A stretch of DNA of 63,603 nucleotides, filler included, from Reticulomyxa filosa (taxonomy: Eukaryota; Protista; Foraminifera): assembly GCA_000512085.1 (NCBI GenBank). It is 18 parts of 18 records of this genome, joined end to end, with 100 filler letters (N's around TTAATTAATTAA, not from the genome) between each part and the next. Parts side by side here need not be neighbours in the genome. Positions count along the whole stretch, not along the records: positions 7,393 to 8,670 come from ASPP01029478.1; positions 8,771 to 14,384 come from ASPP01027561.1; 16 more parts are not named here. One strand, given 5' to 3'. Shown one piece after another: positions 7,293 through 10,700 of this stretch; positions within the stretch are counted from its first letter, which is position 1; every line of letters starts with the position of its first letter. Both the position numbers and the translations under genes were made by a program. The notes under the pieces were generated by a model. That model had not been told where the DNA came from. It saw nothing but the letters and a program-made list of their open reading frames with translations, and made no database searches.

Positions 7293-7396
7293 NNNNNNNN
7301 NNNNNNNNNNNNNNNNNNNNNNNNNNNNNNNNNNNNTTAATTAATTAANNNNNNNNNNNNNNNNNNNNNNNNNNNNNNNNNNNNNNNNNNNNCCCA

Positions 7397-7798
7397 CTAT
7401 GAGTCTCCGTCGATGCCTTTGAGAGGTAATGGGGGATGCACACGGCATTCTATACATTACGAGTCTCCGCCAATAAATAAAAAGAGCAGCTGGTTGAGAG
7501 GTAGATGCGGGCTCTATGAGTCTCCGGCTTTAATTATGGTGTCTGTTGAGAGGTAGGTGAAGATCCTATAAGTCTCCGGCTTTAATTATAGTGACTGTTG
7601 AGAGATAGGAGAAAGATCCTATAAGTCTCCGGCTATAATTCAAAGTGACTGTTGAGAGGTAGGAGAAGATCCTATAAGTCTCCGGCCAATAATTAAAAGC
7701 GACTGTTGAGAGGTATGAGTCAAGCACTACAATTCTCCTGGCGCACACGCGATGTTGAGAGGTAGTGAGTTGGTTTATCCAACTAACTACAAGTCTCC
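7397..7798 (+). repeat. Non-coding dual-motif array of hairpins (8 x YTAYRAKTCTCC alternating with 7 x TTGAGAGRTA)
   Basis: Motif A starts at 7397, 7457, 7514, 7566, 7619, 7672, 7727, 7787. Motif B at about 7419, 7494, 7546, 7598, 7652, 7706, 7755. Period 52-60 nt with variable intervening sequence. Confidence 0.95.
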
Positions 7799-10700
7799 AG
7801 CGTGAAAAAAAAAAGTTCCCCATCCATTCTCACTTCGTTCTTATTTTTTTTCCATTTGCAATTTACATCATATGTTGGTACATTCTCAATGCATCGTCGT
7901 CGGAGTACGTATCGTCCAATTCCGGGTATGTATACAAATGTGTTTTTTTTTTAGATTGATCTTTTTGTAATAATTTTTTTTTTTGGTAGGAGCTCCAACA
8001 ATAATGGTGCTAACAGTGTGATGGACATCATTGCGACTATTAATATCACATTCAGATTGTAATGATTGTGCACAAGATTTTTGCTGATTGTAATGACAAT
8101 AAAACAATAACTAAAGTTTGTGTTTGATATTCTGTCTGTTTATGTATTTATGAGATTTAATCTAAAAAAAAATAAAATTTTAACAAGATAAAACGAATCA
8201 ACTGTAAATTATTCCCAGCTTTATCAACAATGACAACGACAACAACATCTGATGGATTTGTACAAGAAATTGCAAATCTTTGAAACTTTGTTACCAAGAT
8301 AGATCGATATCCATGGAATTAGAGCCAGTCCAGAAACTATTTGTTCATGATCAAGAGTTGAAAAAGTAAGTCTTGAAAGAAGAAAAATTTGAATTGTGTT
8401 TCTAAAAATTGATTAATGATATGAATGATTTTTTTTTTTTTTTTTTTAAGTTACACTTTTCATCTCAAGAAAGAAGTTGTTTTAAAAATAATGAAGAATT
8501 GTCTCTTTTTGTCGTTTTGTATATTGCAATTTCACATTTTTCATTAGTAAAAAAGCGTAATGCTGCAAACTTTTCCTCTAAAGTATTTGCAAAAGCACTT
8601 GAAGTTATCACACTTTTTTTTCCAACGCTTCTTGCGATAATTCGACAAACCAGAAAAACACCTCCTTCACNNNNNNNNNNNNNNNNNNNNNNNNNNNNNN
8701 NNNNNNNNNNNNNNTTAATTAATTAANNNNNNNNNNNNNNNNNNNNNNNNNNNNNNNNNNNNNNNNNNNNGATTTGGATATTTGGTGCTATTTGTTGGTG
8801 TGATATCCAATTGTCATTATAATGGCGCAATTATTCCTGATTCCTGGTTTTCCTGTGATACTTTTCAGTTGGCTCCTTTGATTTTCTTTTGTGTTTATTC
8901 CGCACGCATGGCAGGCCGATTATATGATGCAATGTTTGCATCAATTCAGGGGTCGTGACGCCACCAGTCCTGCAAGCAAAAGAGTCCACATATGTGGACA
9001 AACATAATGATGACGACGACGACTCCAACAGACTCGATTTATCTATGGACAGCCATGTGGCGTGTGCCAGTAGATATTCACGCGCTTAGGGATGCATAGC
9101 ATCCCATTTTTAAGTGGCCTGCACTAATGAAATGATAGAGGATATATGCAAGCAATCACCTGGATGGTGTAATTGCTCCCAATCCTCTACAATCAACACT
9201 ACTGTCATGGAAAAACGGCCGTCATAAGCGCAGCGGCTTCAATAATTCCAGTTCAGTCACTTCATGTTTTGTAAATATCATTATGTTTGAATTCAATCAC
9301 CACACACCCTTTTGTTTGGTTGACATAGTTGGAAATACATTTCGCATCATCAAGATTCCCAACTGCATTGCTCATTGCATGTAATCTCATTTTTGTGTGT
9401 GTGTTTGTGTTTTCTTGTTTGATTTGCTGTATTTGAAGTTATATTTATAATTTGATTTTTAATTTTGAAATAATAATATTAAGAATGACTTCCTCCTACA
9501 TTTTAGACACTATTCTCTCCTTCATATAAAATTTTCATCACTCATTCACTTTAGATTTATTTTTTTGGATATTGCATTCGTTCATGGCAAAGAATTACAG
9601 TCAGCAGGATTAAATCCGCAAAAGATTATTTTTTAAAAATAAAAAGAGAACTTAATGAAAGCAGTTTTTTATTCAAACTTCTAAAATAAGAGTATGTTCA
9701 ATGAAAGATAGCAACTCACAATTTAAATAATCTGTGCAAAGGGAGATAAAAAATAACAATTGTGCGTGCACAAAGTAAAAAAAAAGAAGACAAGCTTTAT
9801 AAAATTAATCCTAACACAGTTTCAAGAAAGACATTTTGTTGCAACTAAGTCCCATTCAAATTGTCACTCAAATTGCGGGTTTTTTATTTATATTAACAAA
9901 TCTTTGATTCCTGTCAAATAAATAACATAAACTTGTTGAAAATGCTTTGAATAAGGAGGCTACCTATCTATCAAATTTCAACATGTGCATAGTTAACACA
10001 ACAGAATCTGTTAGTTTCAATGATCATAAGATATTTCTACTTTTTGATAAATATCACTGTCTTTTCAGATACAGTAATATATTTTCATTTTTTTAAAATA
10101 GCTTCACACTTGTTTCCGCACTTGATGACATTATATCATGACATGTTTGCAAGTGTGCATAACCAAGCTGCCAGAAATGCTCTCAGTAAGATCGTGTAAC
10201 ATATAATGAAGCTGATATTTTGAATATTTTTGTTTTTGCATTTGCACATGCGACAATGGTGTTGAAGGTGATATGCAAGTGGTCAGTCTATCCTTCAGTT
10301 GACGATTTAAGACAATATAGACGAAGGATACATTGTGATATCAATCAACGATTTTGTATTATTTTTTGGTACGTGTGATTAAAAGGGCTAGAGTTAATGA
10401 TGTCCATCTTATTATTCACAATGAATTCCATAATTCTTTCTACTATTCATTAACCGCTTTATCTAAGCATGCCAGATAGTGTGTATTTCAGTCACCTCCA
10501 ATTGCACATAGATCTTTCTCCAATTATTAGAACAAATGACATTAGTGTATGCGATTTAGTCGTTATCACTTCCTTTATAAAGCAAATTCGTCTTGTGAAT
10601 ATTACAATAGAAGCTGCAGAACATAATTGGTTTCCTTTGTGTTAAAAAATGCATTTCTAAAAAAGACCCGCATCTTAATCTTGGAATTTGTCTTGATTGT

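Follow-up and report, generated by a model that had tools for sequence, protein, structure and literature searches.

RNAs such as CsrB/RsmZ, Xist repeat A, roX and the engineered MS2/PP7 cassettes act through the number of their binding sites. Another kind of array, TIGR, is defined by two repeats of 8–12 nt and by unique spacers whose length is fixed, at 9–12 nt, per locus (PMC12045711). On the scale of a single site, the arginine-sandwich motif of TAR and 7SK is a pyrimidine bulge followed by a G-C and an A-U pair (PMC6189040). We analyzed a hairpin array of the foraminiferan Reticulomyxa filosa, located in a stretch of 63,603 nt (the window, along which all positions are counted) joined from 18 parts of assembly GCA_000512085.1. 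Like multivalent repeat RNAs, the array has a short conserved structured motif, 7–8 or more copies of it and AU-rich variable linkers. However, it has no sequence relation to these RNAs, and it conserves the bulge-helix-internal loop part of the stem rather than the apical loop. In its mode of action it would come closest to repeat RNAs of the CsrB or Xist-A type while belonging to neither, and it is a selected-looking, apparently undescribed hairpin array whose architecture is of a familiar type. A literature search found no description of the motif, which is weak evidence.

The array occupies positions 7393–7804 (+ strand) of a contig piece of 1278 nt (ASPP01029478.1), in which the CpG observed/expected ratio was 0.83, a value that speaks against vertebrate DNA; an AT-rich, intron-bearing protist would fit. 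Its GC content was 44%, compared to 30% for the remainder of the piece. As the original prediction had stated, two motifs, B (which carries GAGA) and A (which carries UCUC), alternate and form 7 B-A pairs. The motifs are 10 and 11 nt in length. We located 7 B motifs (starting at 7419, 7494, 7546, 7598, 7652, 7706 and 7755) and 8 A motifs (7398, 7458, 7515, 7567, 7620, 7673, 7728 and 7788), strictly alternating and without a gap. The A-to-A periods were 60, 57, 52, 53, 53, 55 and 60 nt and the B-to-B periods were 75, 52, 52, 54, 54 and 49 nt; Tandem Repeats Finder detected the central four units only. The array consists of seven complete units and one partial unit clipped at the contig start, where unit 0 (7393–7408, +) keeps only its 3' arm with the A motif at 7398, so that the array indeed runs off the contig as had been claimed.

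All core hairpins lie on the + strand. In unit 1 (7419–7468), the apex spans 29 nt and contains an extra stem of 7 bp, two of them G-U, and the outer stem is broken. Unit 2 (7494–7525) has an 11-nt apex and an outer stem extending from approximately 7488 to 7529. Unit 3 (7546–7577) is a member of a central, recently duplicated group; unit 4 (7598–7630) has the longest outer stem and an A-U loop-closing pair in place of G-Y; and unit 5 is found at 7652–7683. Unit 6 (7706–7738) is degenerate, with a weak upper stem. Unit 7 (7755–7798) has a 23-nt apex with a 6-bp extra stem, and is closed by a 5-bp outer stem (7746–7750 with 7800–7804). Linker 1 (7469–7493, +) is 25 nt long with an AU-rich center and two AAUAAA sequences; the remaining linkers (+) are at 7409–7418, 7526–7545, 7578–7597, 7631–7651, 7684–7705 and 7739–7754, and the outer stems are formed by linker ends. 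An A10 run (7805–7814, +) does follow the last unit on its 3' side, but it was given no weight, being one of seven A/T runs of at least 8 nt on the contig and probably ordinary in this genome. No further copy was found on the contig. Mis-assembly would not produce compensatory pairs, and could alter the number of central units.

Conservation was restricted to the motifs. In the unit alignment, 17 of 21 motif columns were invariant versus none of the 27 other gap-free columns, a contrast that is somewhat inflated by anchoring the alignment on the motifs; the minimal numbers of substitutions in the same columns were 4 and 50, respectively. Invariant columns were clustered (p = 0.0002, with the choice of window left free). 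In the outer units, motif identity was 0.86–1.00 and apex identity 0.28–0.52, with a shuffled level of 0.43, in agreement with the claim that the central units are near-identical and the outer ones differ in everything except the motifs and their pairing. The invariant letters include the unpaired UU, the loop G and the loop A, which argues against palindrome-correcting mutation because such a process would erase them.

We ran RNAalifold on the aligned units and obtained a consensus hairpin with covariation, the score of which was reached by 0 of 500 shuffles. From its base, the fold comprises 3 outer bp, a 1x1 loop, another 3 bp, the UU bulge, the GAGA/UCUC helix, the G/RAG loop and a 5-bp upper stem (RUAG/CUAY) that leads into a free apex. 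The GAGA/UCUC, U-A and A-U pairs are invariant (7 of 7 units), two-sided changes occurred at 6 of the 15 consensus pairs, and 89.5% of alignment cells were paired in the consensus structure. The 500-shuffle control ignores relatedness, and stricter permutations were added, in which the non-motif columns were permuted, the motifs and relatedness were retained and the structure was re-derived every time. Under this scheme, the consensus energy was -7.3 versus -2.0 +/- 1.1 (p = 0.0013) and covariation remained significant (p = 0.009); by part, the apex alone gave p = 0.005 and the outer stem alone p = 0.02. When units 3–5 were collapsed to one, leaving five lineages, the permutation p was 0.002. 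Shuffling of individual apices (11–29 nt) in units 1–7 gave p values of 0.009, 0.28, 0.025, 0.0007, 0.002, 0.70 and 0.001, which combined to 2.6e-5 over five independent lineages, part of this signal being contributed by one semi-conserved G-C pair.

These results agree with the proposal that the variable B-A segments pair via compensatory change (motif-fixed p of about 0.001), and the four stems quoted in its favor were present at 7426–7460, 7605–7622, 7659–7675 and 7762–7790. The 1x3 G/RAG loop, which had been assigned to all seven units, was found in six; unit 6 has a U.C mismatch and a G/AAU loop, and has kept neither the loop G nor most of its upper stem, which implies that tight constraint does not act on every copy. 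The core stems of the predicted fold were borne out, but that fold was incomplete, having missed both the outer stem and the invariant UU bulge. Evidence for the outer stem is weaker than for the remaining fold, and this stem is also broken in unit 1. Overall, the data support the view that a single-stranded hairpin whose bulge and loop letters are fixed has been under selection.

A second register, in which UCUC pairs with the GAGA of the next unit, had been suggested as a further possibility, which would allow a two-register switch. Pairing of the segments enclosed in this register gave a Fisher p of 0.67 versus 2.6e-5 for the main register, and its pair probability was near zero except at linker 1, so the switch was not supported; from the same difference between apex shuffles, we conclude that selection acts on the B-to-A hairpin. 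With regard to strand, the covariation term was 0.84 on + versus 0.08 on -, and 8 types of G-U pair were counted versus no A-C (3 versus 0 in the core stems alone), consistent with the + strand molecule deduced earlier from wobble asymmetry. Because the structure was derived from these very sequences on the + strand, both the number of pairs and the tally of G-U are biased towards +; the + strand is modestly favored.

Folding stability was marginal. The whole array folded no better than shuffles (z = -0.84), units folded alone ranged from z = +0.4 to -1.8 except for unit 7 (z = -3.9), which folds equally well on both strands, and units 2 and 6 folded alone did not prefer the consensus fold. 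In local folding, the hairpin probability was 0.4–0.9 in units 3–7 and poor in units 1–2, and unconstrained prediction for the full array misfolded across units. Holding the hairpins would presumably require the binding of a protein or folding during transcription.

Units 3–5 and linkers 2–5 form a similarity gradient in which nearest neighbors are most alike (apices 83–92%), which suggests recent stepwise duplication in the middle of the array; the linkers are related by descent. Units 1, 2, 6 and 7 appear to be older or separately evolved. Such a history could also be that of a functionless minisatellite that arose from a palindromic founder unit, with decayed outer copies and new arms introduced via template switching. 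A homogeneous center with ragged ends and most similar neighbors are typical of minisatellites, the lack of excess folding stability fits, and the extra arm of unit 7 is a near-perfect inverted repeat. We nevertheless consider this explanation unlikely, as decay is uneven between motif and other columns, the bulge and loop letters survive, and the extra arms occur only between B and A and never between A and B.

The array shares with TIGR arrays two alternating motifs of 10–11 nt, two classes of variable segment and at least seven units. In contrast to TIGR spacers, its segments vary from 11 to 29 and from 10 to 25 nt and are either self-paired or near-identical, and their context is eukaryote-like. 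The assignment was rejected, as spacer length and uniqueness both fail and CCA/UG boxes are not shared by both motifs. A Nop-domain Tas gene was absent from the 856 nt downstream of the array (the upstream side lies beyond the contig). The proposed TIGR-like guide-RNA precursor was not supported, because the variable segments are length-variable and pair with themselves or match their neighbors; no variable strand is left free to act as a guide. A different type of precursor may be considered, a polycistronic transcript in which a nuclease or protecting protein recognizes the hairpins and the linkers are cut, releasing hairpin RNAs of 45–65 nt that would represent a new small-RNA class. The units are self-contained and closed by an outer stem, the linkers are single-stranded and AU-rich, and processing of stem-loop TIGR arrays takes place at their linkers (PMC12045711). 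Transcription by Pol III would also be compatible with the absence of T5 from the array on the + strand. On the other hand, there is no unpaired variable guide region and neighboring apices are highly similar; linker 0 is only 10 nt long; and C/D, Sm and Pol III boxes are absent from the array. Such a precursor is, in our view, rather unlikely.

Several long T runs are present downstream of the array; the first T8 on the + strand (7844–7851) is a weak candidate for a Pol III end. An intron-like sequence (7926–7989, +) begins 120 nt past the array with a GTATGT donor and has T-run acceptors at 7954 and 7989; these signals suggest + strand Pol II transcription nearby. A second one (8366–8450, +) extends for 85 nt from a GTAAGT donor to a T19-AAG acceptor, a length compatible with the mean intron of 87 nt reported for R. 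filosa (PMC13746701).

Arrayed imperfect inverted repeats with fixed extrahelical bases and variable terminal structure are also a feature of attC sites. The array could accordingly consist of single-stranded DNA hairpins at which a mobile element or an endogenous virus would recombine, be nicked or start replication, similar to attC, REP/REPIN or baculovirus hr. Besides the attC-like design, DNA tolerates G-T pairs, the GC content of the array exceeds that of the surrounding sequence and unit 7 folds alike on either strand. However, an integron attC array was rejected in the absence of RYYYAAC/GTTRRRY at the arms (the attC R boxes), of cassettes between sites and of an integrase; HUH and transposase genes were likewise not found on the contig, no relatives occurred in viral, phage and plasmid sets, and the linkers share descent, unlike captured cassettes. 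We regard a DNA-level role as quite unlikely. Other candidates of this kind were CACTA termini, rejected for lack of a 3-bp target duplication, and resemblances to REP GTAG feet and, on the - strand, to the GDF codons of the L1 endonuclease, both dropped as chance.

Bulge-helix-bulge substrates resemble the array in that a 4-bp helix is flanked by two asymmetric loops. They differ in that the + strand loops of the array lie 5' of the helix strands, the inverse arrangement, with sizes of 2 and 1x3 instead of 3 and 3. The - strand has the correct geometry, but its sizes are 2 and 3x1, covariation is lost and the sequence is neither tRNA nor rRNA, and this candidate was rejected.

A splicing-related cassette was considered in view of the donor-like GAG/GUA of B and the acceptor-like RAG of A, in which case the apices would be mini-introns of 20–38 nt or relics of spliced-leader RNA. 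A GU is located at the 1x3 loop in 6 of 7 units, as compared with spliced-leader donors; SL RNAs typically carry their donor in a stem, next to a small bulge (PMC6053224), and 5 of 7 B-to-A segments (7426–7793) run from GT to AG. Yet unit 4 begins with AT and unit 6 finishes with AT, the donor G is not fixed but covaries with the base opposite it, and the would-be exons (22–37 nt, mostly not multiples of three) contain stops. Spliceosomal mini-introns were rejected on these grounds, as were spliced-leader RNA genes, whose would-be exons vary in both length and sequence and which lack an RAU3-6GR Sm site. This explanation is highly improbable.

Equally improbable is a small self-cleaving or ligand-binding RNA of a new type in tandem. 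Its unpaired nucleotides are invariant and CUGUUGA is reminiscent of the hammerhead CUGANGA, but hammerhead, hairpin, twister and HDV cores are absent, and only about six unpaired letters are conserved with no pseudoknot or junction seen, which argues against a catalytic core. The ribozyme or retrozyme option of the original prediction fell on the same absence of core motifs and of Rfam matches: CUGANGA itself does not occur, and GAAA occurs only twice rather than once per unit. Other known RNA families were also rejected: a box C/D snoRNA cluster (no CUGA on either array strand and no Rfam match), box H/ACA (the array internal loop is the fixed part and is 1x3; no Rfam match), a tRNA array or tRNA-derived SINE (no cloverleaf and no Pol III A/B boxes), SECIS elements (AUGA in some units only) and kink-turns (no tandem GA). 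Resemblances to human U3 near boxes C'/B and to group I R/S elements were dropped as chance.

The Rfam comparison proposed earlier yielded no match to the array, ARAGORN identified no tRNA in it, and BLAST against phages and plasmids gave no match. Scanning for the B-A pattern returned 5 viral, 5 prokaryote genome and 15 metagenome matches; B-A-B was matched 0 times in metagenomes and once in viral sequences, A-B-A twice and B-B 50 times in viral sequences. All were rejected as isolated chance matches or coding repeats, never arrays, and they scored no more than 22 bits on the unit model versus 47–65 bits for the units, which are self-scores since the model was built from these units. One chance match, at 8781–8832 of a viral contig (L005; also L019 and L023), folded as a long hairpin in coding-like sequence and was a single copy with 19 bits. 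No relatives were found in viral, prokaryote and metagenome collections, in which eukaryote genomes are few and which say little about kin.

The original prediction had held that the periods exclude a coding repeat. This argument failed in part, as some periods are divisible by three and, on the - strand, a frame of 85 codons with a YLSTV repeat runs over units 4–7 (7566–7823), which is explained by two B-to-B periods of 54 nt; there are two stops in the entire array in this frame, no TGA occurs and no homologue was found. However, the motifs occupy different reading frames along the array, so the non-coding interpretation still holds. Two overlapping frames of 67 (8468–8668, -) and 73 codons (8451–8669, +) leave the contig end; neither had a credible homologue, Atlas recognition was low, and two protein matches of the former were dismissed, each adding up weak similarities to repetitive proteins. 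The region 8229–8547 (+) has the look of a broken spliced gene, with protein-like pieces in shifting frames and 31 open codons after the acceptor, and searches with its exons individually found no homologues. For the frames of the contig, nothing was returned by homologue searches, exact look-ups, Pfam or Atlas; no frame had a credible homologue or domain, confirming that no partner protein is visible on it.

What the units retain is a surface: the two unpaired U and a 4-bp helix of purines against pyrimidines, followed by an asymmetric loop of purines and three more pairs. Apex length and linkers are free to vary. Such a distribution is characteristic of protein-binding sites on single-stranded nucleic acid; a dimer on double-stranded DNA is argued against by the spacing of the half-motifs, which varies by 18 nt. 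Among the four options offered in the original prediction, multimeric protein-binding hairpins fit best. The intron-like signals downstream, which share the + strand, are in line with an RNA. With one locus and seven related units, about five of them independent, as the evidence base, we tentatively favor an RNA of repeated protein-binding hairpins that serves as a multivalent scaffold, a reading that we place just short of an even chance. We infer each of its elements, namely RNA rather than single-stranded DNA, expression, protein binding and purpose. In the proposed mechanism, the array would be transcribed from the + strand and every unit would fold alone into a long irregular hairpin, whose fixed bulge-helix-loop surface would be read by a protein or small complex, perhaps via an arginine-rich arm. 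The apex would be needed only for stem closure, and the role of the AU-rich linkers would be confined to spacing the units. Local tandem duplication would have multiplied the sites into a multivalent landing pad, its copies giving avidity or titration; the pad may serve as a scaffold or decoy RNA or, within a longer transcript, as a cis element that directs export, localization or packaging.

The arginine-sandwich letters are present in the array, UU followed by GA/UC in 7 of 7 units and the closing G-C in 6 of 7. As in TAR and 7SK, the UU bulge precedes GA/UC and a U.A-U triple may be possible in principle; unlike them, the array adds a 1x3 purine loop and tandem repetition. This pattern comprises five letters and could be due to chance, and would serve as a lead only.

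It is also possible, albeit distinctly on the doubtful side, that with this array a class of modular non-coding RNA not yet described in eukaryotes has come into view for the first time. Its lineage-specific, protein-binding bulge-helix-loop module, repeated in tandem, would act as a scaffold or be cut into hairpin RNPs and would have copies elsewhere in the genome and in relatives. As a compact aptamer that is repeated and leaves its apex free, the unit would be a natural counterpart to MS2/PP7 tags, and if the array is instead a DNA-level site, it would indicate an unknown site-specific element in a eukaryote. Non-coding RNAs of AT-rich protists are barely catalogued, and a covarying hairpin cassette is a bait for its protein that could reveal an unknown RNP or RNA-transport signal.
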